Sequence record: NC_049849.1
DNA: 64,000 nucleotides
Strand: one strand, 5' to 3'
In this document: one piece after another, positions 2,956 through 63,535 of the stretch
How positions within the stretch are numbered: the first letter of the stretch is position 1
Layout: every line of letters begins with the position of its first letter
Made by a program: the position numbers and the translations under genes
Notes under the pieces: generated by a model
Told to the model about the DNA's origin: nothing
Databases searched by the model: none
Seen by the model: only the letters and a program-made list of their open reading frames with translations

Positions 2956-4530
2956 ATGGAAAAAATAGTCAAGATTTACAAGCGCGAGGCATTCCTCATC
3001 AAGAGCTCGCAAATCAAGCGAGACGTGCGGGAAGACATAGAACGCAACTTCACCTTCCGGTTCTATGAGCAGAAAGCGTGCGACAAGTGCGAGTTCGTAG
3101 CCGATAGGTTCGACGAGGATACGTGCGGCAGTTGTCCTGCGTATCTCGGCGGCGCCTTGATGGCCAAGAACATCAAGATCAAAGAGAACAAGTTCATTAC
3201 CACGCCGATTGGCAATCGCAAACTCCTAGTCAAGACTCTGGCAGAGCATGGGTACGAGGCCAAGTTCGTTTCCAAGCATCCGAAGAAAGAGGATACGGCG
3301 TTCAAGCGCCCCTTCAAGTTCACGGGTAAGCTGCGTGACTTCCAACCTGCAGCCGTGAGTGCGTTGATCGAAGGTCAACGCGGAGTACTGAAGGCTCGCC
3401 CACGTTCAGGCAAGACCGTTATGTCCACGGCTGCTATCTGCAAGGTCGGCAAGAAGACTTTGATCTTGGCCAGCCAGCACGATTGGTTGGTCGGCTTCTA
3501 TGAAACCTTCTGCGGTTCCAAGACTCAAGACCCATTGACTACAGCGCGGGGGTCTGGCGTCACGGCGGCCGAACGTCGAAAGTACTTCAAGGAGAAGAAG
3601 CGGGCCAACGTTGGCTTCTGCAAGACCTTGGAAGACTTCAAGCGTCATGACGTATGCTTGGCTACGGTGCAGACGTTTCGCAGCGAGGGTGGCCAGAAGC
3701 TGTTGCGCAAGATTCGTGATATGTTCCACGTCCTGGTCATTGACGAAGTACACTACTCGGCCGCTCCGAACTACGCTAAGGCTATCTCCAAGCTGAACGT
3801 CAAATACTGTTGGGGTTTGTCGGGTACTCCGACTCGCAAGGACCAACGGCATTCGATCATGCACAATCTGATTGGTCCGATCTTGTTTGAGCCGAAGATC
3901 GAATCGCTCAGACCTGCAATCGCATTGGTCAAGACAGACTTCACCGATCCGCGCAAACAGGCGCAGTGGTCCAGTCTCGTAAATAAACTAGAATCCGACC
4001 CTAAGCGGTTGAAGCTGATTGCCAAGTGGGCAGTGAAGGACATTGAGAACGGCCACATGGTGCTCCTGCCATTCGCACGTATCAAGGTCATCAAGGCCGT
4101 GGTCATGGCGATCAATAAGATCGCGGGTAAGAAAGTCGCCGAGGAGTTTCACGGCAGCGTTAAGAAGGAAAAGCGTACCGAGCTGATTGAGGCGGCCCGT
4201 AAGTACAAGGTCAAGTGCTTGGTAGGCCAGGCCAAGCTGCTGTCGACCGGCATCAACATCCCCCGCGCATCGTGCATCTATGACGTGACGTTCAGTTCCA
4301 ACAAAGAGAACTGCGAACAGCGCGTGGCGCGTATCCTCACTCCGTACGATGGAAAGCCCACGCCGTTGCTCCGCATCTTTATGGACAACACTGGTGTGCG
4401 GCGCGGATGTTTGCGAACAGAGTTCTGGCAGTGCATCAAGCCCAAGTTCAATCCGATATGGAAGGGCGACGATCAAGAGTTGTTCATCAACTACTTGTCG
4501 AACAAAGATAAGGACATGGAAAAATGGTAA
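2956..4530 (+). CDS. superfamily 2 DNA helicase (UvsW/XPB-like)
   Basis: Q-motif LRDFQ, Walker A ARPRSGKT, DEVH, SGT, LLSTGINIP, QRVARI; N-terminal CxxC...CxxC. Confidence 0.85.
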   Translation: MEKIVKIYKREAFLIKSSQIKRDVREDIERNFTFRFYEQKACDKCEFVADRFDEDTCGSCPAYLGGALMAKNIKIKENKFITTPIGNRKLLVKTLAEHGYEAKFVSKHPKKEDTAFKRPFKFTGKLRDFQPAAVSALIEGQRGVLKARPRSGKTVMSTAAICKVGKKTLILASQHDWLVGFYETFCGSKTQDPLTTARGSGVTAAERRKYFKEKKRANVGFCKTLEDFKRHDVCLATVQTFRSEGGQKLLRKIRDMFHVLVIDEVHYSAAPNYAKAISKLNVKYCWGLSGTPTRKDQRHSIMHNLIGPILFEPKIESLRPAIALVKTDFTDPRKQAQWSSLVNKLESDPKRLKLIAKWAVKDIENGHMVLLPFARIKVIKAVVMAINKIAGKKVAEEFHGSVKKEKRTELIEAARKYKVKCLVGQAKLLSTGINIPRASCIYDVTFSSNKENCEQRVARILTPYDGKPTPLLRIFMDNTGVRRGCLRTEFWQCIKPKFNPIWKGDDQELFINYLSNKDKDMEKW

Positions 4531-5201
4531 CGAAGAAGCAAGACTCCAAGGCTGCGAAGAAAGCAGTCAAGCAAGCGAAGCCCGAGAAGAAGACCGTGAA
4601 GCCTGCAGCGCCTGCGCACGTTGAGCTGCCGACCAAGATCGAAATCAAGACCAAGCACCCTCTGATCCCTGGCTACGTATTCCGGCAAGCTCCCTTCAAG
4701 TGGGACCCGATCATCTTTTCCCTTGAGTCGGAGAAGCTGAAGTCAGCGTTGATCGAACCCGCTGGTCAAGACGAATCGCTTGAGCTGTTCCTGAACAGTC
4801 CGATGGCTCCAATGCTCTACTCGGTGTCCGGTGCTCCTGATGATGCGAAAGCTTTGTACTTCGCAGCGTATCTCATGGCGCATCACATCAAGCACGTGCC
4901 GAACGCTAACCCGGTCTGGCATTCTCTGTATGGCGGCTTCAGCAATCCGCTACTCGACAAGGCGCGGGACGGAAACCTCTTGCCGTCCATGTTGATTCTC
5001 ACGAATCTTACTCCGACCTCTACGGGTTCGAAGCTGGAGAAGGCACGCGATCTGCTGACGCACTTCCAAAACATTCCGCGCATCGTGGTGTCGGCGGGTA
5101 TCGATCCTATCTCTTTCTTCGCCACGTCGCTGCACCTTCCGGTCAACGGCTTTGCATATTTCAGTGAAGCCCTCATCAAGTCACGAGTCGAGATTTACTA
5201 A
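4524..5201 (+). CDS. hypothetical; possible degenerate DnaC/IstB-like helicase loader with Lys/Ala-rich N-terminus
   Basis: Directly upstream of DnaB. Spacing SVSGAPDDAKA / MLILTNL / RIVVSAG mimics an AAA+ core lacking the catalytic residues. Confidence 0.4.
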   Translation: MVTKKQDSKAAKKAVKQAKPEKKTVKPAAPAHVELPTKIEIKTKHPLIPGYVFRQAPFKWDPIIFSLESEKLKSALIEPAGQDESLELFLNSPMAPMLYSVSGAPDDAKALYFAAYLMAHHIKHVPNANPVWHSLYGGFSNPLLDKARDGNLLPSMLILTNLTPTSTGSKLEKARDLLTHFQNIPRIVVSAGIDPISFFATSLHLPVNGFAYFSEALIKSRVEIY

Positions 5202-6551
5202 ATGAGTCGCGTCAAAGTTTCAAGTCCAAGAGTTGAGACCGCTGTACTACGTGGCATGTGCCACAAGGACTTGGCTGTCAGCGGTACTCTAGTGTCCAGC
5301 ATGGATACGTCGTACTTCAGTTCTGAAATCACGACGGAGATTTTTGAGTACATTCGTGAGGCGTTCCATCAAGACGGCAAGAGCCCGCGATACAAAGTCT
5401 TGTTGGAAGACCCCAGCCTAAGCAAGGCTGCTCGGCAGTACCTGCGTGACTCCGAAGGTTCGATTGACTCGAAGAGCGATGCAAAGAAGGCCATCAAGGT
5501 CCTGAGCAAGTATCGTCAAATTCGTGAGATTGCAAACCTCGCACACTACCTGTCTGATTCTATCCAAGAGGATAAGCCGGACATGGAAGAAATGATGGAC
5601 AAGGCAACGCAGATGCTGGCGACGGCACGCGCTACCAAGTCCAGCAAAGATGACTTCGTTCACTTTGGTAAGAAGTCGACTTCGAAAGAACTGGTCAATG
5701 AACTACTCTTCAGCAAGAAGTCTGAACGTGTGATTCCTTCGGGGTTCCAGACGTATGACTCAGTCTCTGGTGGGTTCTTGCGCGGGTCGCTGTTCACCAT
5801 CGGCGGTACGTCGGGTGGCGGTAAGTCGCAGCTGGCATCCTCTATGGCAGTCAGCTTCTGCGAGCGTGGGTTTCGAGTAGTAGTCGTGCCTCTTGAAATG
5901 GGCAAGAGCGACATGCTGGCTCGTATGATGGCCAAGGTCTGCAAATTCGACTCGGGTCGCTTGCTTAAAGAAGACCTGCCCCTCGACATTGCAAAGAAGC
6001 TGGCAAAGAAATTCGCCAAGTGGGAAGCCAAGTGTGCCGAGAATGGCGGACGTTATACGATCTACAAGCCGCCTGGCGATCCGTACATTGAGGATATCTA
6101 CGCCGCGGTAGCTCCCCTCAAAGCCGACGTTCGCGTCATCGACTATATCTCGTTGACCAAAGAGCGCCAAGGCGTTGACCAATGGAAGAAGCTCGGTCAG
6201 GATTCGCGTTACGGCAAGATTGATGCTGAAGCGAATCAATGCGTAAATATCCAGTTGTGTCAGATTAGCGAGGAAGGCAAGGTGAAGTACTCGTCGGCGA
6301 TCAAGGAACACTCCAGTGATGCTTGGTTCTTCGTTGCTACCGATGAGACGAAAGAGCAGGGCATCATTCGCATCACGCAGGAAAAGTCACGTAACGGCAA
6401 TGGCTTCCCGTTCACGCTGGGTATCTCTTATGAGCACTCGGACGTGTACGACTTGGAAGACTGGGACCAGAACCAACCACGCAACGCACTAGGTAACACT
6501 GAAGCTCAAGAGCAAGAGCTCAAAAACTTCAGCAATCAAGCGGACGTTTAA
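5202..6551 (+). CDS. dnaB: replicative DnaB-like helicase
   Basis: Walker A GGTSGGGKS, VPLEM, Walker B VIDYISL, QLCQI, ITQEKSRNG; N-terminal helical domain. Confidence 0.85.
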   Translation: MSRVKVSSPRVETAVLRGMCHKDLAVSGTLVSSMDTSYFSSEITTEIFEYIREAFHQDGKSPRYKVLLEDPSLSKAARQYLRDSEGSIDSKSDAKKAIKVLSKYRQIREIANLAHYLSDSIQEDKPDMEEMMDKATQMLATARATKSSKDDFVHFGKKSTSKELVNELLFSKKSERVIPSGFQTYDSVSGGFLRGSLFTIGGTSGGGKSQLASSMAVSFCERGFRVVVVPLEMGKSDMLARMMAKVCKFDSGRLLKEDLPLDIAKKLAKKFAKWEAKCAENGGRYTIYKPPGDPYIEDIYAAVAPLKADVRVIDYISLTKERQGVDQWKKLGQDSRYGKIDAEANQCVNIQLCQISEEGKVKYSSAIKEHSSDAWFFVATDETKEQGIIRITQEKSRNGNGFPFTLGISYEHSDVYDLEDWDQNQPRNALGNTEAQEQELKNFSNQADV

Positions 6552-9500
6552 ATGCTAGATAAACAGTTCAAGTACAAGATTCCTGACCACGACGAGAAGT
6601 CGTACCAGCTGTCATTGAGTCGCTGTTCCAACTGGAGCAGTGGCAAGGAGCGTACTCTGATCGTATTGCAGACCGTGCCGACTGAGAGTCTGTCGAGCGG
6701 TGTGCTGATGAGCAAAGGCTTGGTGGCGAACACCATCAAGAACTGCATCAACTTCTCGAAGGAGAATGCCAAGAAGCATTACGGTGTCAGCTTCAACAGC
6801 ACGTATGCGGTCGTTAACTTCAACAATCGCAAGCACATGCACCTCAAAGGCCAAGGCCGTCAGGATGCAGAGGTTGAGTTCGGCAAGCGGCTGAAGAGCA
6901 TCATCAAAGACTTGAAGCCGACGCGCATCTTGGTGTCTGGTGATATCGCAGCCGAGCAACTCCTTGCTATTGAAAACCTGGAGTTCAAGCGCGGCTGGAT
7001 TCACGACTACAAGGGCATGACTGTCGTCAATACGCTGGACTTGGATCAGCTGCTGGCGAAGGGCGGTGCTCTTGCAAACCTGCTGGGCTATTGGACGCGT
7101 CACCTTACCAATCTGATGATCGGTAAGAACCCGTTCGATCTGTCGAAGCTCAAGGCTACGGCAATCTATGTAGACACGATTGAGAAGTTTGACCGCATGA
7201 TGGTTCGGTTGAAGAAGGCATCCGAGATTGCCATCGACACTGAAACCAAGAACCTGTCAGTCCTGCATAACAAAATCTATACGATCCAGTTTGCGACTGA
7301 TATCAATCCCGACGAGGGATTCGTGCTGCCGCTATGGCATCCGAAGACTCCCTGGTCGAAAGAAGACCTCAAGTACATTCGCAAGACGCTGCGAGCATTC
7401 CTGTTGAACAAGCATCCGAATGATGCCATGTTTGTGTACTTCAATGGGATGTTTGACTTGCGCATCATGCGTCAGCAGTTCAAGATTCCGATTCTGCGTC
7501 AGCGCACTTGGGAAATCACAGCGGGCGAACACTTGCTCGATGAGAACACCAAGGACTTGAAGAACTGCGGCAAGAAGACGAAGATGAAAGGCTCGGGTTG
7601 CGGCCCTGGCGGTTTGCTGCACACCTATGCACGGTATGGCAACGACCACTACTTGACTGCGGACTTCTCGAAAGAGGAGCGCACGACCACGGGTAACATT
7701 GAACCGTCCGACAAGAACTTCCTGCTGTACGCGGCAACTGACGTTGTGGCATTGCTCGGCATTCGCAAGATGCAGCTCAAGGCAGCGGCCACATACGAAA
7801 TCGAGGGGAAGTCCTACAGGCCGTACTACGAGAAGCACGTCATTCACATGATGGGCTCGACGGCTCACCAGCTGTCGCACCTGATGAATGACGGCTCGTA
7901 CGTTGACACCAAGTACTTGAAGAAGTTGATCGGCAAGGCCTCGCCTCTGCTCAACGAAATCAACAAGGTGCTGGAGAAGATGCGCACGGTGCCGGCCTTC
8001 GTCGATGCCAACGCTCGCATTCTCGCAGCCAATGGCATCAAGGCCAAGTCGCTGTTCGGCGGTCCTGCTCAGTGGGCGTTCGCTCCGTCGAAGACTGCGC
8101 ATCTGCGCGTCCTATTCTTTGACGTGCTGGGGTTGGAATCTGTCGCAGAAACGAAGAGTGGTGCCCCTTCGACCGGCAAGGAATTCCTGAAGCACTACAA
8201 GTCTATTCCTGAAGTCGCGCTGTTCGCTGAATGGCAGAAGATGCAGAAGCTGCTTTCGACCTACGTGAAGGGCTGGGCTCGTCGCATGGGTAAGGACGAA
8301 GACTCATTGACCGATGACTTCATCCGCGCAGGCTATTCGTTCTTCGGCGTGAACACTGGTCGCTTGAACTCGCGTGATCCGAACTTCCAACAGATTCCGT
8401 CGCACGGCGATCTGGCGAAGATCATCAAGCGTCTGTTTATTGCGCCCAAGGGTCGACTCCTCATCCGTTATGACTATTCGGCACACGAAGTACGTGGCTG
8501 GTCGATCATTGCGAAGGACGAGGTACTGGCCAACGCATTCAGGGCAGGTCAGAAGCTGCGTCAGCAATGGATTCAAAGTCCGACTGACGAAGTGAAGAAG
8601 GAACTGAAGCAGAAGGGTGACATTCACATTCAGAACGTGTATCGATTCTGGAAGAAGTGGGTGGGCAAGGACGACCCGATGCGTCAAGCCGTTAAGGCTG
8701 TGGTGTTCGGCGTGCTGTACGGCAAGTCGGCAAAGAGCCTGGGTGTTGATATCGGCGCAGACGAGAAGGAAGCGCAAGCGATCATTGACAAGATGTTCTC
8801 TGAGTTCAAGATGGGTGCTCAGTGGACAAAGAAGATGAAGTCGTTGGCTGAGAACAAGTACTATGTGTACTCGATCATCGGCCGTCGTCGTAATCTCTAC
8901 GCAGGTCTGACTGGTGAGAAGGGAATCATTAGCCAGCAGATTCGTCGCGGGTCTAACGCTCCGATCCAAGGCTTCGCATCTGAAATCGGCATGAAGGCAG
9001 GCCGCATCATCACCGAGTACTACTATGATGACGTGCAAGCGCTGATGCAGAAGTTCGACCCTGACCTTGAGTACGAAGACATGGTGCTGCAAGCTAACCG
9101 CACGGTGCACGATGCGAACTACTACTCGGTGCCGTACTCGATGGTGATTCCATTTATCCACATGCTGCAGCACGGTGCGACGTACGGCGTGGCGCGACGC
9201 ATGGAGAAGGAGTTCGACTTCAAGTTCACGGTCGAGCCTGAAATCGAAATCGAAATCGGCGGACGTGACGACAAGACCTACAAGTGGGACTGGTCGTTGC
9301 CGAACCTGATTGAGTGCATCGAGAAGGCAGTGCATGACACGCACGACCTAGGTCAGCTTGATGGTACGCCGGCCGAGGTGATGGCGAAAATCATGGCTCC
9401 GTATCAAGACTCGAAAACTCGTAAATACCTGCAAGAGAAATATCCCCTGCTTGGTATCACGAAGCTTGAGCCGCAAATCAAATCGGCAGTACCTGACTAT

Positions 9501-9719
9501 CTCAAGCAGTTGGGTACGAAGGTAGATAAGATTTCGGCGCAGGTCGATGACTTGATTAAGCTCAACAAGAAAGCCAAGGACGGAATCTTGAAAGAGAAGG
9601 TCGATGGTAAGAAGGTTGAGCGAGACGTTGGCAAGGAACTGAAGCAGGCTGAAGCTAGTCATGCAGCAGCTCTTGACGATCATCGCAGGTTCAAAGCGTT
9701 GCAAAAGGAAATGGCATAA
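6552..9719 (+). CDS. polA: family A DNA polymerase with 3'-5' exonuclease and N-terminal UDG-like domain
   Basis: ExoI AIDTET, FNGMFDL, YAATD; TGRLNSRDPNFQQIP; motif A YDYSAHEVR; motif B RQAVKAVVFGVLYG; NAPIQG; motif C TVHDA. Confidence 0.92.
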   Translation: MLDKQFKYKIPDHDEKSYQLSLSRCSNWSSGKERTLIVLQTVPTESLSSGVLMSKGLVANTIKNCINFSKENAKKHYGVSFNSTYAVVNFNNRKHMHLKGQGRQDAEVEFGKRLKSIIKDLKPTRILVSGDIAAEQLLAIENLEFKRGWIHDYKGMTVVNTLDLDQLLAKGGALANLLGYWTRHLTNLMIGKNPFDLSKLKATAIYVDTIEKFDRMMVRLKKASEIAIDTETKNLSVLHNKIYTIQFATDINPDEGFVLPLWHPKTPWSKEDLKYIRKTLRAFLLNKHPNDAMFVYFNGMFDLRIMRQQFKIPILRQRTWEITAGEHLLDENTKDLKNCGKKTKMKGSGCGPGGLLHTYARYGNDHYLTADFSKEERTTTGNIEPSDKNFLLYAATDVVALLGIRKMQLKAAATYEIEGKSYRPYYEKHVIHMMGSTAHQLSHLMNDGSYVDTKYLKKLIGKASPLLNEINKVLEKMRTVPAFVDANARILAANGIKAKSLFGGPAQWAFAPSKTAHLRVLFFDVLGLESVAETKSGAPSTGKEFLKHYKSIPEVALFAEWQKMQKLLSTYVKGWARRMGKDEDSLTDDFIRAGYSFFGVNTGRLNSRDPNFQQIPSHGDLAKIIKRLFIAPKGRLLIRYDYSAHEVRGWSIIAKDEVLANAFRAGQKLRQQWIQSPTDEVKKELKQKGDIHIQNVYRFWKKWVGKDDPMRQAVKAVVFGVLYGKSAKSLGVDIGADEKEAQAIIDKMFSEFKMGAQWTKKMKSLAENKYYVYSIIGRRRNLYAGLTGEKGIISQQIRRGSNAPIQGFASEIGMKAGRIITEYYYDDVQALMQKFDPDLEYEDMVLQANRTVHDANYYSVPYSMVIPFIHMLQHGATYGVARRMEKEFDFKFTVEPEIEIEIGGRDDKTYKWDWSLPNLIECIEKAVHDTHDLGQLDGTPAEVMAKIMAPYQDSKTRKYLQEKYPLLGITKLEPQIKSAVPDYLKQLGTKVDKISAQVDDLIKLNKKAKDGILKEKVDGKKVERDVGKELKQAEASHAAALDDHRRFKALQKEMA

Positions 9720-9732
9720 GCCATTCCTCACT

Positions 9733-9764: not shown

Positions 9765-9780
9765 ACCCATTGAGGTGTTC

Positions 9781-10404: not shown

Positions 10405-10405
10405 T

Positions 10406-11395: not shown

Positions 11396-11780
11396 GACAG
11401 GCTGGTCCGCATTCAAAGGATTCTTGCCCAACCCGTGGCTCATCGTCGTGGTGTTCATCGCTTTGTGCACCGTGGGTCTCTACGGCTACCATTCTGGCTC
11501 TACCGCAATGGAAACTGCGAAGAATCTGGAAATCCAGAAAATCGTAAATAGCAGGAACATGGAGCGTGGCGATTGGAATACGCGACTGGCCAATCTGGAA
11601 ATCAAAACGTTTGACCAGTCTCTGTATTTCAAGAACCTGCAAATCACAAGCGCGGTCGAACGCGAGCGTATCGTTACCGAGTATGTGACGAAGTGGAAGA
11701 CTCAGCCGGCCAATCAAGACTGCGGTCTGCCAGCTGATGCGATCAGCGTGCTTAACTCTCTGCAAGAGGTTCGCAAATGA
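11379..11780 (+). CDS. inner-membrane spanin (Rz-like)
   Basis: Single N-terminal TM helix (WLIVVVFIALCTVGLYGY), periplasmic coiled region, C-terminal Cys; coupled to a lipoprotein gene. Confidence 0.7.
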   Translation: MLALLKTGWSAFKGFLPNPWLIVVVFIALCTVGLYGYHSGSTAMETAKNLEIQKIVNSRNMERGDWNTRLANLEIKTFDQSLYFKNLQITSAVERERIVTEYVTKWKTQPANQDCGLPADAISVLNSLQEVRK

Positions 11781-12082
11781 TGCGCCTACGCTTCGCACTG
11801 TTGTCTCTCGTTCTCGTGAACATTGTTCTTTTGGCCGGATGCGCACCCACTCCGCAAAAGCCTGACCAGTCGTTGATCCCAACCAACGAAGTCCGAGTCA
11901 GTCCCGATGCTCTTTTGCAATGTCGTAAATACGAGAAGTTAGAAGTGAGGAAATATACGCCGCCCGAAGTGGTGGAGATAATTTCCGGTCTCTACAATCT
12001 GATTGACGAGTGCTCAGATAAACAAAAAATCCTGTCTGAGTTCGTCAACGGTTTGAATTTGAAAAACGTAAATACCCAGTAG
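11777..12082 (+). CDS. outer-membrane spanin lipoprotein (Rz1-like)
   Basis: Signal peptide with lipobox LAG-C, Pro-rich start, two further Cys. Confidence 0.72.
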   Translation: MMRLRFALLSLVLVNIVLLAGCAPTPQKPDQSLIPTNEVRVSPDALLQCRKYEKLEVRKYTPPEVVEIISGLYNLIDECSDKQKILSEFVNGLNLKNVNTQ

Positions 12083-16924: not shown

Positions 16925-16933
16925 TCGTAAATA
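16925..16933 (+). promoter_or_regulatory. TCGTAAATA motif (candidate phage promoter) upstream of the deazaguanine cluster
   Basis: One of 16 exact copies on the + strand; intergenic; followed by a hairpin (16935-16961) and the queD RBS. Confidence 0.6.
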
Positions 16934-16934: not shown

Positions 16935-16961
16935 AGGGATGTGGACTAGCTCCACGTCCCT
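16935..16961 (+). other. stem-loop (terminator or 5' stabilising hairpin)
   Basis: AGGGATGTGGA-CTAGC-TCCACGTCCCT. Confidence 0.5.
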
Positions 16962-20735: not shown

Positions 20736-21337
20736 AAGTAGAAATCAAAACGTTTGAAAACGTGTGGGGCTGCGCTGTATTCAACGCCGAGCTGCATCGG
20801 AAGATGAAGCATCATCATTTGGTGGTCGGCGTCGATACGCTATTCAGTTCCAAATACAAGCCGGTCAAAGGCAAGACCACAATCGTCATCGACAACTTTG
20901 CACGTCTGCGCAGTAGCGGCGTTCCTATCATCGGGTACGAAAAGTCTCCGACGCAGACCTGGGTGAAAGTTAAAGCTAGCTGGAAGAAGCCGAAGCCCAA
21001 CAAGCCCGAGATTAAGAAGCCGGTGTATCTGGCAGGCGAACTCAAGGTGCTGCTCCCTACGGTTCCGCTGATGCTCGAGTATCAAGCCGCCGTGACCTTG
21101 GAGCAGATGGAAGCTCTGGCCGAGAAGTACAGAGCTGAAATCGACAAGCCTAAGAAAGGCTCACACAAGTGGTTGCGTCGTTCGGTCAACAGCACGCTCA
21201 AGGTCCTGGCGCCTGAGAAGTATGACCCCAAGTTTAAAGAGAAGGCCGCAGCTGCTCCTAAGTCCAAGCTTGGTGCCAAGGCGAAGAAAGCGAAAGACGT
21301 AAATACAGAAGTCGCTAAGAGGAAGGGCAAGAAATGA
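20732..21337 (+). CDS. hypothetical Lys-rich protein within the Que cluster
   Basis: Coupled ATGA overlaps on both sides. Confidence 0.6.
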   Translation: MKVEIKTFENVWGCAVFNAELHRKMKHHHLVVGVDTLFSSKYKPVKGKTTIVIDNFARLRSSGVPIIGYEKSPTQTWVKVKASWKKPKPNKPEIKKPVYLAGELKVLLPTVPLMLEYQAAVTLEQMEALAEKYRAEIDKPKKGSHKWLRRSVNSTLKVLAPEKYDPKFKEKAAAAPKSKLGAKAKKAKDVNTEVAKRKGKK

Positions 21338-23442: not shown

Positions 23443-23582
23443 TGAAATGCGGGGCACGTTGCTCCTGTGGGTATCCAATCGTGGCCGGGTGAAACAGCCA
23501 GTGCCTAAACCAGTCGTCTCGGAAGCCCTGTGGCGCCTAGCTTTCAGCGGACAAAATTTAATAGTCCAAGGAGGTACACACG

Positions 23583-24290: not shown

Positions 24291-25253
24291 ATGGCTAAGT
24301 ATCAGCACTCCGAAACATTCAGGGCACTGAAGTCTACCAAGGAAGAAATCGAAGGCAATCTCACCAGTGCACAGTATCTACAGACGCTGGACTACTTTCT
24401 GTGGAGTGCGCTGAATCCCATCGCGGCGGAGTGTCCTGATTTCTTCTACTCGATGATCGCCAAGTTCGTGAGTCTGCAAACGACGAAACCGAATACGAAG
24501 TTCACGAGTGGGGACAAGAAGCAGCTGCCGCTCATCTTGTTCAATGCCTTGATAAACAAGAACGCAGAGAAGCGATTCGAGTCTATTAAAAAGATGTATT
24601 GGAATCGCGGGCTACTCTTTGGTCTGATCCTGACCTTTCAGAAGCTGACCAACGAGTACCAAGCTCTGCACTCAGTCTTCAACGATGTTGACTTGACCAC
24701 TCGAGTCAATCGTATGCGTCAGATTGAGAAATCAGTCGGCGCGAAGAACCCAGCGTATCTCTACGCAACGATTCAGCAAGTGGCCTACTGGGACTCGAAG
24801 GCTCGCTGGTTCAAGTCGTTGATCGTACAGAAGTTCACGCGTATGGCGATGCTGCAAGCACAGCAGACCTACAAGGACTTCGACCACAAGGTTCCGCTGG
24901 ATGATGTATCACACGTCTACATGATGGTAGTCAACAAAGCCATTGATCGCTGTAACTCCAACATGGGAGTGATCACGACCTTTGTTCAGAATTGGTTGCC
25001 TACGGCTCGAGCAATCGTGCAGCAGATGGCATCCAAGTCTACCGATGAGTCATGGGACGAGCTGGCAGAAACCCTGGGTGACAGTTTAGAGCTCGGTGCT
25101 ACAATGCCGAACACTGACTCTGAAACCCTGCAGCAAATCTCTTACCTCGCACGACTGGCCGATCCACAAGGCTTGGTGCGTACCCACTTGCAAATCCCTC
25201 AATGGGTAGCGGCCAAATACCGCGCCCGCCTTCTCAATCTTGCTAAAGAGTAA
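24291..25253 (+). CDS. divergent sigma70-family factor (RpoD-like non-conserved region + region 2, no region 4)
   Basis: RMRQIEKSVG...KARWFKSLIVQKFTRMAMLQA...LDDV...NKAIDR...MGVITTFVQNWL aligns by eye with RpoD KLQQIEEETG...KARRAKKEMVEANLRLVISIA...LDLI...MKAVDKF...GYKFSTYATWWI. Confidence 0.6.
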   Translation: MAKYQHSETFRALKSTKEEIEGNLTSAQYLQTLDYFLWSALNPIAAECPDFFYSMIAKFVSLQTTKPNTKFTSGDKKQLPLILFNALINKNAEKRFESIKKMYWNRGLLFGLILTFQKLTNEYQALHSVFNDVDLTTRVNRMRQIEKSVGAKNPAYLYATIQQVAYWDSKARWFKSLIVQKFTRMAMLQAQQTYKDFDHKVPLDDVSHVYMMVVNKAIDRCNSNMGVITTFVQNWLPTARAIVQQMASKSTDESWDELAETLGDSLELGATMPNTDSETLQQISYLARLADPQGLVRTHLQIPQWVAAKYRARLLNLAKE

Positions 25254-25983: not shown

Positions 25984-26269
25984 TCGGCAAGTCAACACTG
26001 ACTACGTTGAAGGCCTTGAGCGCGCAGTCCAGACCAGCGATGCAATCAGGGCTGCTGTAGCCGACGGCTTAGACGTTGCGCAAGTCATGACTCAACACCT
26101 CGCGCGGCACACGCAGCACAAGGCGCAGAGTCTGCAAGCTGTTATTGAGACAACCCTGCTTGCACTCCAAGCACTGCAGGGTCTTGATGACTCGAATCAG
26201 AAAATCGTAAATAAGATCGTCGATGCACTAACGACTTCTATTGGTGCATCCAAACTGAGGAATAACTAA
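25949..26269 (+). CDS. hypothetical protein
   Basis: Helical 106-aa ORF; start refined. Confidence 0.5.
   Translation: MSEITTLLNLLDRQVNTDYVEGLERAVQTSDAIRAAVADGLDVAQVMTQHLARHTQHKAQSLQAVIETTLLALQALQGLDDSNQKIVNKIVDALTTSIGASKLRNN
26205..26213 (+). promoter_or_regulatory. TCGTAAATA motif upstream of the SSB gene
   Basis: Exact motif about 57 nt before ATG 26270. Confidence 0.55.
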
Positions 26270-27809: not shown

Positions 27810-27851
27810 AGGGAGCCCCTTTACTCAAGGGCGCTCCCTTCGTTCGTTTTC
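27810..27851 (+). terminator. rho-independent terminator
   Basis: AGGGAGC-CCCTT / AAGGG-C-GCTCCCT stem followed by a T-rich tail. Confidence 0.6.
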
Positions 27852-33192: not shown

Positions 33193-33376
33193 CCAATGCC
33201 CACTCCCTGACGGTGCTTGCTTCTTCAAGCATCGTGAAAACGGATTTTGTAAATATACAGAGACAGACGGCATGACTGTAAACCAGTTGGCCGACCTTGT
33301 TGGTACGACCCGAATAGACGAGGCACAGTACCAATCAATTCAAACCAATATCAGATCAAAGATGGAAAACCTATGA
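33149..33376 (+). CDS. small Cys-rich / HTH-like protein
   Basis: C..CPL...C...C followed by MTVNQLADLVG; start uncertain. Confidence 0.35.
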   Translation: MGATCIVIKRELVVSQCPLPDGACFFKHRENGFCKYTETDGMTVNQLADLVGTTRIDEAQYQSIQTNIRSKMENL

Positions 33377-40348: not shown

Positions 40349-40357
40349 TCGTAAATA
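40349..40357 (+). promoter_or_regulatory. TCGTAAATA motif
   Basis: Intergenic, 24 nt before ATG 40381. Confidence 0.6.
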
Positions 40358-41739: not shown

Positions 41740-42055
41740 AGCCGCTTTTGGCGGCGACGTTCTGACTCAAAACATTCCTGTGGTCGTTCGCTTCAGCGCT
41801 CCGTGGTGTGGCCCCTGCCGCAGCTACGCGCCGATGTTCGACAAGGCAGCTACTGAGCTGCAAGGCAAGGTCCGTTTTGTTCTCGTCGAAGCCGACGACA
41901 ATCCGGGTCTGACGCAGCAATTCAATGTGCGCGGCCTGCCGACCACGCTGTTCTTCAGCCAGGGTGAAGTCAAGGCTGCAGTCACCGGCGTCATGACTTC
42001 GCTGCAGCTCAACGAGCGCCTGGCTCGTGAGTTTCCCGAAATCGTAAATACCTGA
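41717..42055 (+). CDS. trxA: thioredoxin
   Basis: FSAPWCGPC active site, cis-Pro loop RGLPT. Confidence 0.92.
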   Translation: MTVIQTNEAAFGGDVLTQNIPVVVRFSAPWCGPCRSYAPMFDKAATELQGKVRFVLVEADDNPGLTQQFNVRGLPTTLFFSQGEVKAAVTGVMTSLQLNERLAREFPEIVNT

Positions 42056-42306: not shown

Positions 42307-42518
42307 GCAGTCCCAATCAAGTCTTGCTTGACCGGTATCAGGAACTCCACAACATGATGGTGCTAGTCACTGCTCAAATTCAGAAGGCTGACATTGACTG
42401 GCGGCATCTTGCGGCAGCAGGCATTACGGTGGTCGCAGTTTCGCAATTGCGCAAGGCCGAACCTACGTTGTCGCTCGGCCAGGCACTTGAAAAGGTGCGC
42501 GCTTTTCAGAAATCGTAA
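42303..42518 (+). CDS. hypothetical protein
   Basis: Coupled 71-aa ORF. Confidence 0.5.
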   Translation: MSSPNQVLLDRYQELHNMMVLVTAQIQKADIDWRHLAAAGITVVAVSQLRKAEPTLSLGQALEKVRAFQKS

Positions 42519-42521
42519 ATA
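42513..42521 (+). promoter_or_regulatory. TCGTAAATA motif upstream of tRNA-Arg
   Basis: Exact motif 20 nt before the tRNA. Confidence 0.6.
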
Positions 42522-42887: not shown

Positions 42888-43190
42888 ATGGAAAGAATGC
42901 CGGAGCTCTCCGAGAACGCAGCACTCCTGATCGCTAGTTTAGAGGCTTCGGTGCTGTATCGTGCCAGTATCGCGGATGCACAAAGTTTCGATGGCACCCG
43001 CGCTACTGATTTCGTAAATAAAGACAGACGGGCTTTGATAAAGTACGTTGCGGCTCTCGAAACCCAAGCAGCGAAGCAGGCAAATCCTGATGCGCAGATT
43101 GCGAAGATGAAAGAGCAACTCAAGAAGCTGCGTAAGAAAAACAAAGAGCTACGTGCAGTAGCACCCGGACGTTCATACATTCTCAAATAG
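42888..43190 (+). CDS. hypothetical coiled-coil protein
   Basis: TAAATG coupling. Confidence 0.5.
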   Translation: MERMPELSENAALLIASLEASVLYRASIADAQSFDGTRATDFVNKDRRALIKYVAALETQAAKQANPDAQIAKMKEQLKKLRKKNKELRAVAPGRSYILK

Positions 43191-44356: not shown

Positions 44357-44445
44357 TCGTAAATAGTAGGGTAAGCAGGGAAGTCTGCAGTCTTCCCTGT
44401 AGTACAGAATAAGTTTGCGAGTTCTGAATTCAGAAATCGTAAATA
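44357..44445 (+). promoter_or_regulatory. tandem TCGTAAATA motifs with a hairpin and a 14-bp palindrome
   Basis: Motifs at 44357 and 44437; CAGGGAAG/CTTCCCTG hairpin 44376-44399; TTCTGAATTCAGAA 44422-44435. Confidence 0.65.
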
Positions 44446-44515: not shown

Positions 44516-45403
44516 ATGGCAAAGAACGCAAAGGCAGCAGGCAAGAAGGCGGCTGGTAAGAAGGCCGCTGGCAAGAAGCAAGTCGAGAAGAAGGTCACGA
44601 AGGCTGCTGGCAAGAAGGGCCCGGCCCCCAAGAAGCAAGCTGCGAAGAAGACGGTTGCCAAGAAGACCGTAGCCAAGAAGACGGCAGCGAAGACCCCGAA
44701 GGCTGCCAAGGCTCCACGTGGTGCGAAGGGTGGCAAGCAAGCTGTGGCAGCGTCGCAAGTTCAAGTCAACAACGGCATGCTGATGGTTCAGGTCGTCAAG
44801 AGCATCGTTGGCGACAAGATCAAGGTCACGGCCGAGTACTTCGAAGTCGACGGCGTGAAGATTCCGCGCGCTCTGGTCATCGCAGTTGCCGGCAAGGAAG
44901 TGATCTATCGCGCTTCGATCAACCTGGGCACGATTCAAGACGCCAAGACGATCAAGGGCAATCTGGTCTACACGACTGAACTGGGTCAGGTCATGATTCT
45001 GGATTCGTCGGTCGCTTCCATCGTGATCGGCAACGGTGCAGCCGCCGGTGGTGAAGCCGAAGTCGAAGAGTCGGACAGCGAAGAGTCGGATACCGAAGAC
45101 GGTGACGACGAGTCGGACAGCGACGATGAAGACGAAGCTGATTCGGATGATGAAGATTCGGACGAAGACGACGAAGACTCGGATGACGAGGACTCCGACG
45201 AAGACGACGAAGATTCTGATGATGAAGATTCGGACGAAGACTCCGATGACGAGGACGACGAAGACTCGGACGAGGATGATGAGGATTCCGACGACGAAGA
45301 CGAAGACTCCGACGACGAAGACTCGGATGATGAAGACGACGAAGACGACGAAGATTCGGACGATGACGAAGAAGACTTCGACGACGAAGATGACGACGAG
45401 TAA
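44516..45403 (+). CDS. polyampholyte protein: histone-like K/A N-terminus, small beta core, ~100-aa Asp/Glu/Ser tail
   Basis: AKAAGKKAAGKK..., then DSDDEDSDEDDE repeats; start refined to 44516. Confidence 0.8.
   Translation: MAKNAKAAGKKAAGKKAAGKKQVEKKVTKAAGKKGPAPKKQAAKKTVAKKTVAKKTAAKTPKAAKAPRGAKGGKQAVAASQVQVNNGMLMVQVVKSIVGDKIKVTAEYFEVDGVKIPRALVIAVAGKEVIYRASINLGTIQDAKTIKGNLVYTTELGQVMILDSSVASIVIGNGAAAGGEAEVEESDSEESDTEDGDDESDSDDEDEADSDDEDSDEDDEDSDDEDSDEDDEDSDDEDSDEDSDDEDDEDSDEDDEDSDDEDEDSDDEDSDDEDDEDDEDSDDDEEDFDDEDDDE
45060..45400 (+). repeat. intragenic acidic tandem repeats (DSDDE/DSDEDDE)
   Basis: Recurrent GA(T/C)TC(G/C)GA(T/C)GA(T/C)GAA units. Confidence 0.85.
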
Positions 45404-46659: not shown

Positions 46660-48678
46660 ATGGCAAGGAAATCAGCCAAGCAAGAGGGCTTCGTCATTGC
46701 AGAGGGGTTGGATGGTATCCGTCTCAATCCCGCAATGTACCTCGGGGCACGCGGCCCTCATATGGTGCATCGCTGCATCAAAGAAGCCTTCGATAACTCC
46801 TACGACGAGCACGTAGCAGGTCGCAATGACACCATTGAGGTTGTCATGGACTTGGACCGCAATCTGTACGCGGTGGCCGATAAAGCGGGCGGCATCCCGA
46901 CCGACTACAAGAAGTTGCAGGACGGTACGAAAGAAACGATCATGACGGCTGCGTTCACGCGAGCGCACGCCGGTGGCAAGTTCAACGACAAGTCGTACAA
47001 GACTTCGGCAGGCACCCACGGCGTGGGCGTTGCAGCAGTCAATGCGGTGTGTGAGAAGATGGTCGTTTTCTCGAACTACAATGACAAGCTGGTCCGTCAG
47101 GAGTTCTCTAAGGGCAAGATCATCGGCAAGAAAGACCCGGTCGGTGTGAAGGCGATTGACAAGGACTTCCAAGGCTTGCTGTTGGAGAAGACTTCGAAGT
47201 ACGGCACCATCGTTTTCTTCGTGCCCGATCAAGAAATCGTTTCGGTCGATGCAGCGCGTGGCAAAGAGCTGCCGAAGAAGTACGAGAAGGCTGTGGCTGA
47301 GCCTGCATGGATTGGCAACTGGCTGCGCAACATTGCTGACCTGTACCCCGGATTGATTATCAAGTATTCGATCATGAAGAAGGGTCAGCGCAAGGACTTC
47401 ACCTTCCTGAACAAGAAAGGTATCGAAGTCATCCCGCGCAAGATGGCAGAGAAGAATGAGTTGGGTCTGATGGCGAAGCCGATGACTCACAAGTCGGACT
47501 TCATCACGTTGTCGATTCAGTGGTCCGATCATACTGATACCGATATGTTCCTGTCGTTTGTGAACGCAAGCCCGACCATCGAGCACGGCACACATATGCA
47601 AGGCTTGCGTGACGCGATGTTCCAGGCGGTCAAGCCGTTCGCGCCGACACCGAAGAAGAATCAGAAGGGTTCGGGGTTCTCGGGCAACGATCTGCTGATT
47701 GGTCTGCTCGGTATGTTTGAATGGCGTATGCACGGTGCCACGTACACGTCGCAGATTAAGGACAAGCTGGACTCCAAGGTCGACCGCGAAGTCTACAATG
47801 AACTCCTGCCGGTCTTCGAAGCCTACTTCAAGAAAAACCCTGGCGTCCCGAAGACGTTGGTCAAGCGAGCACTTGTCGTAAATAAAGGACGTGAAGAGCT
47901 GGCACGTACGGTCAAGCAGTTGGCTGATGTGAAGAAGACGCAGCGCGGTTCGGTGCTCCCGCCCAGCTTGGCTGTTGCAGAGAAGGCGGACCCGCGTCGG
48001 CGTGAGCTGTTCATTGTTGAAGGCGACTCGGCAGCGAAGACTGCGATTGATGCACGGAACTCTGACTACCAAGAGGTGTTGGCAGCAGGCGGTAAGCCTC
48101 TGAACGTGCTGAAGGCTACGCTCCCGCAAATCCTGAAGCATGAAGGCATTCAAGAGCTCATCATTTCGCTGGGCGCTGATATGAAGACCTTCAACCCGAA
48201 GGACGAGAAGCCGCAGATTTCGAGCGAGGGGTTGCGTGCCGCGCACATCATTCTGCTGGTCGATCCGGACCCCGACGGTGGACACATTGCAGTTCTCTAT
48301 CTCGCAGCGATCTATCGTTTGCTGCCAGGTCTGTTGAAGCAGGGGCGTGTGTGGTGCGTCGATGCTCCTCTGTTCGCGGGGCTGAAAGACGGCACCGTCT
48401 ACGGCGCACCAACGCTGGATGACTGCGTCAAGAAGCTGCCGAAGGGCATGACTGCAAAGGACGTGGTCCGCATCAAGGGCTGGGGTGAAGTCGATGAGAA
48501 CTGGCTGGAGCCTCTGGCGTTCGATCCAAAGAAGCGCCGACTGATCCAGATTAATCCGTTTGCTGACGCCGAGAAGGAAAAGTATTTCCGCAACATCGTT
48601 GCAGAAGATGCCAGCTACCGCCGACAACTCCTAGGTTTGGGTGACGATGATGCTCAAGAAGAAAGTCAAGAAAGTTAA
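46660..48678 (+). CDS. gyrB: type IIA topoisomerase subunit B (GyrB/ParE-like)
   Basis: EAFDNSYDE, DKAGGIP, HAGGKF, GTHGVG, ELFIVEGDSA, GGKPLN, DPDPDGGHI. Confidence 0.93.
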   Translation: MARKSAKQEGFVIAEGLDGIRLNPAMYLGARGPHMVHRCIKEAFDNSYDEHVAGRNDTIEVVMDLDRNLYAVADKAGGIPTDYKKLQDGTKETIMTAAFTRAHAGGKFNDKSYKTSAGTHGVGVAAVNAVCEKMVVFSNYNDKLVRQEFSKGKIIGKKDPVGVKAIDKDFQGLLLEKTSKYGTIVFFVPDQEIVSVDAARGKELPKKYEKAVAEPAWIGNWLRNIADLYPGLIIKYSIMKKGQRKDFTFLNKKGIEVIPRKMAEKNELGLMAKPMTHKSDFITLSIQWSDHTDTDMFLSFVNASPTIEHGTHMQGLRDAMFQAVKPFAPTPKKNQKGSGFSGNDLLIGLLGMFEWRMHGATYTSQIKDKLDSKVDREVYNELLPVFEAYFKKNPGVPKTLVKRALVVNKGREELARTVKQLADVKKTQRGSVLPPSLAVAEKADPRRRELFIVEGDSAAKTAIDARNSDYQEVLAAGGKPLNVLKATLPQILKHEGIQELIISLGADMKTFNPKDEKPQISSEGLRAAHIILLVDPDPDGGHIAVLYLAAIYRLLPGLLKQGRVWCVDAPLFAGLKDGTVYGAPTLDDCVKKLPKGMTAKDVVRIKGWGEVDENWLEPLAFDPKKRRLIQINPFADAEKEKYFRNIVAEDASYRRQLLGLGDDDAQEESQES

Positions 48679-50263: not shown

Positions 50264-50273
50264 ATCGTAAATA
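50258..50273 (+). promoter_or_regulatory. overlapping double TCGTAAAT(A) motif upstream of the histone-like gene
   Basis: TCGTAAATCGTAAATA at the gyrA stop. Confidence 0.6.
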
Positions 50274-50402
50274 TCCTGTATAATCGTCATGCGCAGTTTG
50301 CGACATTTTGAAACGCAAATTCCGCATGGCACAATTTCATTTCGTTCAATCGAACGAATCTATCCCGCGAATCATTCGCACCTTCCCTCTAGGAAAAATA
50401 AA

Positions 50403-50864
50403 ATGTCGAACATCGTTAAGCAAGTCGCCGAAGTCACGAAAGCTGCCAAGGCTCTGGAAAAGCAACTGAAGGCCGCTACCAAGCGCGCCGACAAGGCTGA
50501 GAAGACTGTCGAGAAGCTGGAAGCAAAGCTCGAAGGCAAGAGCGGCAAGGCTGCGAAGAAGACCAAGGCCGAAAAGCCCGCGAAGGCTGCCAAGGTCAAG
50601 AAGGAAAAGGCCGAGAAGCCCGCCAAGGCCAAGAAGGAAAAGGCTGGCAAGGCTGAGAAGGTTGCCAAGAAGGAAAAGGTCGCCAAGGTCAAGAAGGCTG
50701 ACAAGGCCGCGAAGCCTGCGAAGGGTGACAAGAAGGCCAAGGCTGACAAGGCCGGTAAGGCTGAGAAGGCGAACAAGAAGGCCGACAAGGCAGCCAAGGC
50801 TGGCAAGAAGGAAAAGAAGTCCAAGAAGAACGATGATGACGACTCGTTCACGCTGGGCAACTAA
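50403..50864 (+). CDS. histone H1-like Lys/Ala-rich protein with N-terminal coiled coil
   Basis: Repeated EKPAKA/KAGKAEK units; AGGAAAA RBS; start refined. Confidence 0.75.
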   Translation: MSNIVKQVAEVTKAAKALEKQLKAATKRADKAEKTVEKLEAKLEGKSGKAAKKTKAEKPAKAAKVKKEKAEKPAKAKKEKAGKAEKVAKKEKVAKVKKADKAAKPAKGDKKAKADKAGKAEKANKKADKAAKAGKKEKKSKKNDDDDSFTLGN

Positions 50865-56956: not shown

Positions 56957-56995
56957 TCAATCAGCAACAGAAATCTCTGACAAGGAAAAGTCATC

Positions 56996-57553: not shown

Positions 57554-57602
57554 GCCGCACATTCCGGCCTCTAGTACAACCCTTACAAGCTACACAAGAA
57601 TC

Positions 57603-58091: not shown

Positions 58092-58102
58092 GGAGCACTA
58101 CA

Positions 58103-59482: not shown

Positions 59483-59512
59483 AACAAGAAATCGACTGAC
59501 AAGGAAAAGTCA

Positions 59513-60447: not shown

Positions 60448-60465
60448 CATTAAGGAACAGCAGAT

Positions 60466-61881: not shown

Positions 61882-62090
61882 GTTTCAAACTTGTAGTTCG
61901 CATCGAAGTTCAGAACGAAGAAGGCGAAGTCGTTGATGCGCGTGGTTACGCGACGCATCCGAAAATGAAAGGCTGGTCGCCGTTGCAGACCACGAAGCAG
62001 ATGCGTGAGTTCGCGCACATCGGAAACGCGCATGAGGCCATGAACCACATGCACAAGGTCGTCGGCGCAGTTGCCGATATCATCGGTTAA
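61878..62090 (+). CDS. hypothetical protein
   Basis: AGGAG RBS, coupled. Confidence 0.5.
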   Translation: MSFKLVVRIEVQNEEGEVVDARGYATHPKMKGWSPLQTTKQMREFAHIGNAHEAMNHMHKVVGAVADIIG

Positions 62091-62137
62091 GCAGTACCCA
62101 ATCCAACCTCACAACATCAACAAGGACAACATACATC

Positions 62138-62896
62138 ATGGCAAACAAGAACCGCGGTGCTCGTGCTCAGGACTTCAAGCAGGGCCGTACCATGTACCTT
62201 GCGTACTTCGGCGAACTGCAAGTCGTTCACATCCTCGGCCGGCCTTACAACCGAGGTGGCGGCTCGATCATGAGCGCAGTCGACGTTATGAAGGTCGACT
62301 ACAAAGGCCGCTATGAGAGGGACACTCTGTTCCTCGGTGATCGCGGCGTGCCGGGTTTCGCATACGATCAGCGCCCGAATGAAATCTTTCTGTCGCGTGG
62401 GGCGTGCGAGCGCAACCTCGAACGTATCAAGGAGTACCGCGATGAGTTGTGCACTCGAATCTCAAACGACATGCCCCTATCGTGGATGGATTATCCCGAC
62501 TACGACGACTGGCATGAGCCGTCGCCCGACGAGCAGGTACGGAATGTCCTGAGCCGCATGGCAAGTGTCGGCACGCGTGAAGGCTACTTGCACGAAGTGC
62601 CCGAGCGCCTCTATGAAAACTTCACCATGAGCGATCACAGTACCACGTACGTCTGCCGCAAGCTCGAGTCTGACTGCATCGCCATTGACTACAAGCGCGA
62701 CGACGCCACGGGTGACTGCAAAGACGTGCATGAGTTCTACACGTTGCAGAAAGGTATGTGGCGTCGAATTCTCGAAGGCCGTTTCCATGATCGCAAAAGC
62801 CCGACGGCCTCGAAAGACTTCTGCAAGTTCCCGGTCGCGCACGAAATCAACGAGCTGCTGAAAGGCCTCGTCACCTACGCAATGGAGAGGAACTAA
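62138..62896 (+). CDS. hypothetical protein
   Basis: AAGGA RBS; 252 aa. Confidence 0.6.
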   Translation: MANKNRGARAQDFKQGRTMYLAYFGELQVVHILGRPYNRGGGSIMSAVDVMKVDYKGRYERDTLFLGDRGVPGFAYDQRPNEIFLSRGACERNLERIKEYRDELCTRISNDMPLSWMDYPDYDDWHEPSPDEQVRNVLSRMASVGTREGYLHEVPERLYENFTMSDHSTTYVCRKLESDCIAIDYKRDDATGDCKDVHEFYTLQKGMWRRILEGRFHDRKSPTASKDFCKFPVAHEINELLKGLVTYAMERN

Positions 62897-62897
62897 C

Positions 62898-63257
62898 ATG
62901 CCGTATCGCAATATGACTTCTCACAACATTGCAGTCGACGCAATCGAGCAGGCGCTGCGGCACTTGATCCAGTCGCAACGCGGATTCACGTTCGACTTCA
63001 AGAACGGCAACGGCTTGCAGATCAAGCGGCAGCTTTCGCACTACGCGCAGTTCAAGCCTGGGTACGAAGTGATTGTGCAGTTCCTCGAACATCGTGCCGA
63101 TGACGGGTGCTACGTCGTGTGCGCAGTCGAGCACTTCTCGTTGGCGAATCAGGAGTCGGCCATCGAGGCGTTCATGACGCGACTGATGGGGCCGAATCCA
63201 CACCGCGCTACCGACCTCGGTCAATCGGTCGAGTCCTTCTTCGTGAGGAAAGAATGA
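62898..63257 (+). CDS. hypothetical protein
   Basis: GAGG RBS. Confidence 0.55.
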   Translation: MPYRNMTSHNIAVDAIEQALRHLIQSQRGFTFDFKNGNGLQIKRQLSHYAQFKPGYEVIVQFLEHRADDGCYVVCAVEHFSLANQESAIEAFMTRLMGPNPHRATDLGQSVESFFVRKE

Positions 63258-63535
63258 GCAGTCGGCCCAACTGGAGCGGTGTCCGCGTGCTGGTAACGCC
63301 TACGGAACGCCTGAATCACTACTCCAAGGTCGCGGTAGCATTGCAGGATGCAAGCGACGCCCTTGGTAAGGCAATCGCCATGTGCAGTGATTCGTGCGGC
63401 GATTCTATCCACGGTACGGACTGGGGCACCTACAGAAAGATGGTGACCACCAAACTTCGCGTTGAAGAATTACATCGTAAATACAGGGAGCGCGCAGAGC
63501 GTGCCCTGAAGAAACAACATCAACAAGGAAAGTAA
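63254..63535 (+). CDS. hypothetical protein
   Basis: Coupled; start refined. Confidence 0.5.
   Translation: MSSRPNWSGVRVLVTPTERLNHYSKVAVALQDASDALGKAIAMCSDSCGDSIHGTDWGTYRKMVTTKLRVEELHRKYRERAERALKKQHQQGK

Follow-up and report, generated by a model that had tools for sequence, protein, structure and literature searches.

Occurrence of the nonamer in the first 64 kb of the Motura genome

The analyzed stretch of 64,000 nucleotides (nt), hereafter the window, is identical in sequence to bases 1–64000 of Achromobacter phage Motura (NC_049849 / MN094788), a jumbo myovirus of the genus Moturavirus with a genome of 221,431 base pairs (bp), and its annotated genes lie on the plus strand throughout. Here we analyzed the nonamer TCGTAAATA, which an initial annotation of this DNA had proposed as a −10-only phage promoter analogous to the late promoters of T4. 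All 16 exact copies reported there were found, each on the plus strand and none on the minus strand, whereas dinucleotide-shuffled sequences contained 0.15 copies on average and never more than 2. As all window genes point in the same direction, strand specificity and co-orientation with genes are indistinguishable inside the window, and the test between the two was provided by the relative phiRSL1, described below.

Seven of the 16 copies end 15–56 nt upstream of a start codon or transfer RNA (tRNA). The copy at 16925–16933 is intergenic, 48 nt upstream of the queD start (16982), and is followed by a hairpin (16935–16961), whereas that at 26205–26213 lies in the 3′ end of gp036, 56 nt ahead of the SSB gene (26270), with GTAAATA at the equivalent position in phiRSL1, BcepSauron and BCSR5. 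Directly 3′ of the gp052 stop codon, the intergenic copy at 40349–40357 precedes the gp053 start (40381) by 23 nt, and the copy at 42042–42050 lies in the final codons of a thioredoxin-domain gene, 28 nt upstream of the GTG start of gp341 (42079). At 42513–42521 the TAA of the copy itself forms the stop codon of gp340, with tRNA-Arg (42541) following 19 nt on. The copy at 50265–50273 is intergenic, directly 3′ of the gp330 stop, overlaps a near-copy at 50258 and lies 15 nt upstream of an ATG at 50289 (annotated start 50403), while that at 63475–63483 is located in the 3′ end of gp302, 52 nt upstream of gp301 (63536).

The remaining nine copies are either intragenic or lie 70–150 nt upstream of a gene. 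They are found within the helicase gene gp007 (3977–3985; gene 2956–4530, next start 538 nt on), gp010 (9419–9427; gene 6552–9719, 300 nt short of the gene end), gp013 (11542–11550), gp014 (11923–11931; gp015 200 nt on), the large terminase gene gp040 (31904–31912; gp041 236 nt on), gp338 (43012–43020; gp337 184 nt on) and the topoisomerase II large-subunit gene gp331 (47876–47884), as well as in two intergenic positions, one 3′ of gp336 (44357–44365), followed by a hairpin at 44377–44398, and one (44437–44445) located 70 nt upstream of the gp335 ATG (44516) and 25 nt upstream of an in-frame TTG (44471). The proximity to genes claimed by the initial annotation is confirmed for seven of the 16 copies, and the site that it had assigned to queE is occupied by a near-copy (ACGTAAATA, 21297–21305, 28 nt upstream of the start at 21334).

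The six near-copies listed there (6241, 12066, 21297, 33247, 42882 and 50258) are all real, each with one mismatch on the plus strand, and two further ones were detected at 2817 and 7024. A second ACGTAAATA at 12066–12074 lies at the end of gp014, 57 nt upstream of gp015 (12132), TTGTAAATA (33247–33255) occupies the gap between gp041 and gp042, and GCGTAAATA (6241–6249) is within gp009. The previously unlisted CCGTAAATA (2817–2825) is found at the end of gp006, with gp007 130 nt on.

Genome-wide distribution and anatomy of the element

Scanning the full Motura genome on both strands yielded 31 exact copies, 29 of them on the plus strand within plus-strand blocks of non-structural genes. The other two are on the minus strand, one within a minus-strand gene (147567) and one antisense to two small open reading frames (ORFs) with TTG starts (177517), which brings the coding-strand total, counted by gene block, to 30 of 31; minus-strand blocks are confined to the structural region (~112–154 kb and 176–193 kb). 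The two TTG-start ORFs, gp127/gp126 (177074–177682), are annotated on the plus strand inside an otherwise minus-strand region, where minus-strand ORFs with ATG starts are present at 177347–177691 and 177134–177346; should the genuine genes be these ATG-start ORFs, the 177517 copy would be on the coding strand too.

The k-mer count over the whole genome and both strands, which the initial annotation had suggested as a check, ranked TCGTAAATA as the most over-represented coding-strand 9-mer, with 30 copies versus 0.26 expected (log10 P ~ −50) and a single antisense copy. This ranking was obtained against an order-3 Markov background, as maximal-order statistics masked the word because its sub-words hold the signal. 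The hexamer TAAATA occurs 48 times on both strands together, with 36 copies on the plus strand within plus-strand gene blocks, and is otherwise rare.

Based on an ORF-derived gene set closely matching the RefSeq table, 15 of the 29 sense copies are not fully within a coding sequence versus 6% of the background (P 1.5e-11), corresponding to an 8-fold intergenic enrichment, and 15 of 29 end at most 60 nt ahead of the nearest downstream start codon or tRNA versus 12% (P 2e-7). The genes directly downstream include queD, queE (via its near-copy), SSB, tRNA-Arg, a PF13876-family gene, a gene for an acidic/basic repeat protein and numerous small ones. The logo derived from the 35 CGTAAATA sites reads A-W-W-T-C-G-T-A-A-A-T-A, with information at 12–13 positions only (−4 to +8), followed by a weak preference for C. 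Further upstream (positions −41 to −5, counted from the core) these sites showed no information content, indicating the lack of a −35 element at the spacing of ~17 nt.

Among the 14 intragenic copies of the genome, 11 are in the frame xTC-GTA-AAT-A, where GTA is the rarest valine codon of Motura (13%) and AAT the minor asparagine codon (32%). The earlier statement that copies inside ORFs impose less-used codons therefore holds in part, and the recurrent rare-codon frame indicates, as judged from codon usage, selection on the DNA word and not on the protein. Folding energies upstream and downstream of TCGTAAATA were at background, showing no excess of secondary structure, and Rfam matches in the window comprised two tRNAs only, with no family at TCGTAAATA. 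A link between TCGTAAATA and hairpins, terminators or display in a loop was considered and rejected, as energies were at background and loop-embedded cases were few.

The core GTAAATA is conserved in related phages and follows the genes

We compared these data with related phages, scanning phiRSL1 genome-wide except for its last ~0.5 kb and the other relatives mainly around their sigma gene. In phiRSL1 the core GTAAATA occurs 34 times versus ~1.4 expected, without exception on the coding strand (14 copies in plus-strand and 20 in minus-strand blocks), showing that the word follows the direction of transcription and not the genome strand. Equal frequency on both strands, which the initial annotation had associated with a Chi-like or packaging signal, was thus not observed, the phiRSL1 motif switching strand with the genes. 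The structural modules of phiRSL1 (~60 kb) contain one copy only.

In the relatives, the surroundings of the sigma gene show a coding-strand enrichment of GTAAATA, which is sense-only in all but Vibrio phage GR7B, and each phage shows its own 5′ flank: CGCA-GTAAATA in phiRSL1, GTA-GTAAATA in BCSR5 and BcepSauron, and ATCCT-GTAAATA in Xanthomonas phage PhiXhv-16. In GR7B, TGTAAATA is found 8 times versus 1.2 expected, mostly 30–60 nt upstream of start codons, but GTAAATA as such is present on both strands (12 on plus, 8 on minus). Four metagenomic contigs encoding sigma homologues of 46–55% identity display the same sense bias. Furthermore, the core is located 47–70 nt upstream of the SSB gene in four phages, namely Motura, phiRSL1, BcepSauron and BCSR5.

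Divergent intergenic regions are informative for the position of the element, as a promoter must exist there for each outward unit. In the three regions of phiRSL1 (103984/104083, 110483/110613 and 204433/204970), GTAAATA lies shortly upstream of the first gene of four non-structural units (ORF170, ORF178, ORF295 and ORF296), whereas AATTTGAT is found upstream of the tail-fibre and holin genes. GTAAATA is thus at the expected promoter position in phiRSL1, and Motura has only the one-mismatch CCGTAAATA in such a place, at 193874, 37 nt upstream of the first ATG of the gp113 frame at the head of the 194 kb plus-strand block. The late gene gp114, divergent from gp113, is preceded by the word AATTTCATA.

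The GenBank record of Pseudomonas phage Lu11 (JQ768459) contains 16-nt features, AAAA-CTGTAAATA-, labelled 'putative middle/late promoter' (AAAACTGTAAATA). These annotations were made in silico, and no experimental support for the Lu11 promoter features was found in the literature.

A second motif precedes structural and lysis genes

The region at 112–194 kb of Motura, comprising head, tail, baseplate and lysis genes, carries two of the 31 TCGTAAATA copies. A second word, (C/A)AATTT(C/A/T)ATA (AATTTNATA), is located 20–47 nt upstream of starts, mainly of structural and lysis genes, including those for the tail sheath, the ATPase, the prohead protease, the holin region and minor tail proteins. 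Its copies were identified at 105856 (+), 116600 (−), 122055 (−), 123747 (−), 131247 (−), 154535 (−), 158869 (+), 168200 (+), 189615 (−), 193504 (−), 202763 (+) and 206603 (+), and one copy within the window, AATTTAATA at 23555–23563 on the plus strand, lies 19 nt upstream of gp032, the first gene of gp032-gp033-gp034, outside the TCGTAAATA class. AATTTGAT occupies equivalent places in phiRSL1 and BcepSauron, preceding structural and lysis genes in phiRSL1, and the second motif is a candidate late promoter class on the basis of the genes that it precedes.

As TCGTAAATA is nearly absent from the structural blocks, which carry AATTTNATA instead, its class corresponds to non-structural genes and is not late in timing. 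By its gene content it is a middle or early-middle class, which covers the tRNAs, many small non-structural genes and those for replication, recombination and the metabolism of nucleotides and 7-deazaguanine. The analogy with T4 late promoters is therefore borne out in form, with a shared TAAATA and no −35 element, but not in consensus or gene class: the T4 late consensus TATAAATA has 0 copies in the Motura genome, and the late blocks, with their two copies of TCGTAAATA, carry AATTTNATA.

gp034 is a divergent sigma70-family protein

The window encodes a candidate reader of either TCGTAAATA or the second motif, the 320-amino-acid protein gp034 (24291–25253, plus strand). It has no Pfam match, a profile search of PDB sequences found no sigma factor, and a single-sequence scan of viral contigs returned Motura itself only. 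However, gp034 matches PHROG 17569 'RNA polymerase sigma factor' (E 6e-56), and an AlphaFold2 (AF2) model built from 37 homologues reached a mean predicted local distance difference test (pLDDT) score of 87. The top 50 Foldseek matches of this model in the PDB were almost all sigma70 or fragments thereof, mostly the sigma chain of RNA polymerase holoenzymes, with probabilities of 0.93–1.0 (mostly 1.0) and E values of 6e-3 to 0.15. Based on the modelled fold, gp034 is a divergent sigma70-family protein. The labels of the two records are in conflict, MN094788 giving 'DNA-directed RNA polymerase subunit alpha' and RefSeq 'RNA polymerase sigma factor', and the fold comparison favours sigma.

A published analysis of the PaBG orthologue likewise sees a sigma factor confined to this phage group and mentions a possible second sigma-like gene; the sigma factor is conserved within the clade, with Lu11 in a related jumbo-phage group (PMC7412058). 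The annotations of Motura and phiRSL1 both lack an RNA polymerase gene. For phiRSL1, which has no RNA polymerase genes, rifampicin added before infection abolishes growth, but a T7-like control phage was blocked as well (PMC5468394), indicating dependence on the host polymerase at least early and leaving a phage polymerase possible at later stages.

In Motura (23555), phiRSL1 and BcepSauron the second word AATTTNAT precedes the operon encoding the sigma factor, whereas BCSR5 and one metagenomic contig have GTAAATA in this place. Across the sigma-bearing genomes GTAAATA is conserved more widely than the second motif, which lends weak support to gp034 reading TCGTAAATA. The initial annotation had named the protein encoded at 24291 as the reader; its sigma70-family fold agrees with that proposal, but its assignment to TCGTAAATA is ambiguous, as two motif classes compete. 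gp034 is the most obvious reader of TCGTAAATA; we nevertheless put the chance slightly below even, because the AATTTNATA class, which is also found upstream of the sigma operon, competes for the same factor.

Interpretation as a probable −10-type promoter class

Taken together, position and comparison suggest that TCGTAAATA is probably the core of a 12-nt, −10-type promoter element without a −35 box, serving a phage-specific class of non-structural genes. The −10-only promoter of the initial annotation is thereby well supported in its essentials, without the T4-like late timing and with an ambiguous link to the protein encoded at 24291. In the proposed mechanism, host core RNA polymerase would read the motif by means of a specificity factor directed by the phage, with TAAATA on the non-template strand acting as a −10-type melting and recognition element, and transcription would start roughly 5–9 nt downstream. 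Intragenic copies would then constitute internal promoters for the downstream genes.

Several observations weigh against this interpretation. No mapped transcription start was found in the literature for any phage of the clade; promoter function rests on position and conservation. Roughly every second copy is intragenic, with the following start in some cases over 500 nt away, and the last base of the hexamer is A, where sigma70-type −10 boxes have a key T. Antisense depletion of GTAAATA/TAAATA, which as a sign of selection against spurious promoters would have favoured a promoter at the DNA level, is not significant in Motura or phiRSL1, where the expected counts are only ~1–3, and the motif upstream of the sigma operon differs among the phages, rendering the link between factor and motif ambiguous. 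Finally, a Shine-Dalgarno sequence or start codon lies 4–10 nt past the motif at Motura 107518, 195831 and 203059 and at phiRSL1 2168, 103056 and 199975, so that initiation 5–9 nt downstream would give those genes no normal leader. Owing to these abutting sites, two alternatives retain a low probability, namely a signal acting in RNA and a start at the edge of the motif.

One broader version of the promoter interpretation addresses these sites directly. GTAAATA and AATTTNAT would together form a two-class promoter code without −35 elements across a polymerase-less clade of jumbo phages (Motura, phiRSL1, BCSR5, BcepSauron, Lu11, PhiXhv, GR7B and many metagenomic relatives). In a more unusual variant of it, GTAAATA would differ from an ordinary −10 box, and transcription would be initiated at the motif edge by host RNA polymerase reprogrammed by the divergent sigma gp034 or by an unrecognised factor. 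Edge initiation would explain why ribosome-binding sites abut the motif, yet we regard this broader version as unlikely.

If the motif acted in RNA, UCGUAAAUA could be where an endoribonuclease of phage or host processes or cleaves the transcript, or else a translation signal rich in A/U, punctuating polycistronic transcripts between genes. Its sense-only occurrence and clustering at gene ends and starts would be consistent with such a role, antisense copies are at chance level and not depleted, and the copies abutting a Shine-Dalgarno sequence or within 4–10 nt of a start codon suit an RNA signal better than a −10 box. We nevertheless deem this explanation improbable, since the phiRSL1 motif heads divergent units, where no same-strand upstream transcript is expected, and since it accompanies one functional gene class only, with another motif at equivalent positions before structural genes, which is the pattern of temporal promoter classes. 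Moreover, no structure is associated with the motif, and distances to the start codon spanning 4 to >700 nt disagree with a translation signal.

Somewhat less credit is due to a promoter that does not use a sigma-type −10 mechanism and starts within or at the end of the motif, read by an unrecognised phage polymerase or initiation factor. A start at the motif edge would fit the ribosome-binding sites directly abutting it, and the timing of the rifampicin treatment before infection leaves room for a later phage polymerase (PMC5468394). Consensus scans of selected regions for an early class of sigma70-type promoters returned fewer matches than shuffled sequences, and such promoters are thus not enriched in the regions scanned. 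This explanation is countered by the lack of an annotated RNA polymerase gene in Motura and phiRSL1 (PMC5468394), the presence of a conserved protein with a sigma70 fold, and a hexamer identical to that of the sigma-family-dependent T4 late box.

Sigma-dependent pausing can be caused by −10-like sequences, and the motif might act during elongation, as an ops-like or sigma-dependent pause or loading site on the non-template strand at which a phage factor modifies the transcribing RNA polymerase. Its sense-strand specificity and resemblance to a −10 box are compatible with this, as are the many copies within long genes, where a new promoter seems needless. With 31 copies per genome and an 8-fold intergenic enrichment, however, the motif departs from known loading sites, which occur once per operon leader, and its location at the heads of divergent units and its conserved position upstream of SSB in four phages make an elongation signal quite unlikely. 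Although nearly all Motura copies lie on one genome strand, a DNA signal unrelated to transcription and oriented to the genome (Chi-like, nicking, packaging or priming) is largely ruled out by the phiRSL1 core flipping with the genes in every block (34/34), by the near-absence from ~80 kb of structural genes in Motura and ~60 kb in phiRSL1, and by the concentration of copies in gaps before genes.

Comparison with known promoter systems

The nearest known counterpart of the −10-type element is the in silico promoter annotation of Lu11, and the signal is real but of an expected kind. The Lu11 features share with Motura the GTAAATA core, an A-rich lead, the orientation with genes and a location 40–60 nt upstream of non-structural genes, but have CT in place of TC directly before the core and also accept GTAAATG/T.

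T4 late promoters are read by gp55 together with gp33 and the gp45 sliding clamp. As in Motura, the box is single, short and AT-rich, ends in TAAATA and has no −35 partner, and the phage supplies a sigma-family protein; genes for a sliding clamp and a clamp loader are present in Motura as well. In contrast to the T4 box, TCGTAAATA belongs to non-structural genes and hardly occurs at late ones, and gp034 is a sigma70-like protein of 320 amino acids.

Sigma cascades of the SPO1 type use distinct promoter classes for distinct gene sets. The Bacillus phage SPO1 (gp28 for middle, gp33/34 for late genes) resembles Motura in its compact promoter classes for each gene set, its use of host RNA polymerase and its own sigma factors; its promoters, however, have both −35 and −10 elements, whereas neither Motura class shows a −35 element and one sigma factor has been recognised in Motura so far. 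Extended −10 or '−10-only' promoters (TGnTATAAT) also lack a −35 element and have conserved bases directly upstream of the hexamer, but in Motura the G is one position closer to the hexamer, which is TAAATA and not TATAAT. Thermus phage P23-45 reportedly has promoters of this −10-only type for its middle and late genes.

Beyond the Lu11 annotation, the present data add the conservation across the clade, the companion motif of the candidate late class and the linked divergent sigma factor. With the core conserved from Achromobacter to Vibrio phages that share this sigma factor, a specificity established for gp034 would extend to the whole jumbo-phage sigma family. For Motura itself, the motif provides a map of ~30–40 candidate transcription starts in the non-structural half of a poorly annotated genome, and both motifs together would divide the genome into two regulatory classes.

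Gene starts, terminators and additional features

The motif is also of use in correcting gene starts, a few of which look misplaced when compared with it and with the ribosome-binding sites. The start of gp329 is probably misannotated, as its ORF opens at the ATG at 50289 (ORF 50289–50864; annotated 50403). The ORF of gp113 likewise opens at an ATG at 193920 (annotated 194034), and in gp265, annotated to start at 80799, a good Shine-Dalgarno sequence accompanies an in-frame ATG located 30 nt further downstream.

Convergent block junctions carry near-identical bidirectional terminators, consisting of a GC stem (GCCCC-N-GGGGC) between an A-run and a T-run. They are located at 111959–112044 and 175706–175761 in Motura and at 88207–88262 and 131876–131919 in phiRSL1, with their form conserved between both phages. 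Four intergenic stem-loops with AGGGA...TCCCT arms are present at window positions 16935–16961, 27810–27839 and 44377–44398 and at Motura 87916–87935; three of them start 1–11 nt past a TCGTAAATA copy, and the fourth lies 3′ of the SSB gene with a T-run. GTAAATA is found exactly in a hairpin loop at phiRSL1 44797 (arms of 12 bp), phiRSL1 195473 (5–6 bp) and Motura 112855 on the minus strand (5 bp), which may be overlapping arrangements of terminator and promoter.

The window segment 16982–23200 constitutes a 7-deazaguanine DNA-modification cluster comprising queD, queC, an asparagine-synthetase-like gene, a tRNA-guanine-transglycosylase-like gene (DpdA-type), queE and a GTP cyclohydrolase gene. 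Should the phage modify its G residues, the only G of the motif may itself carry a modification in vivo. The commonest other 9-mers of Motura are coding words of acidic repeats (GACGAAGAC and its shifts) with up to 36 copies, and these repeat words also dominate in Lu11, phiRSL1 and BcepSauron. Lastly, gp335 (window 44516–45403) shows a weak, sub-threshold match to the histone-H1-like HC2 family.

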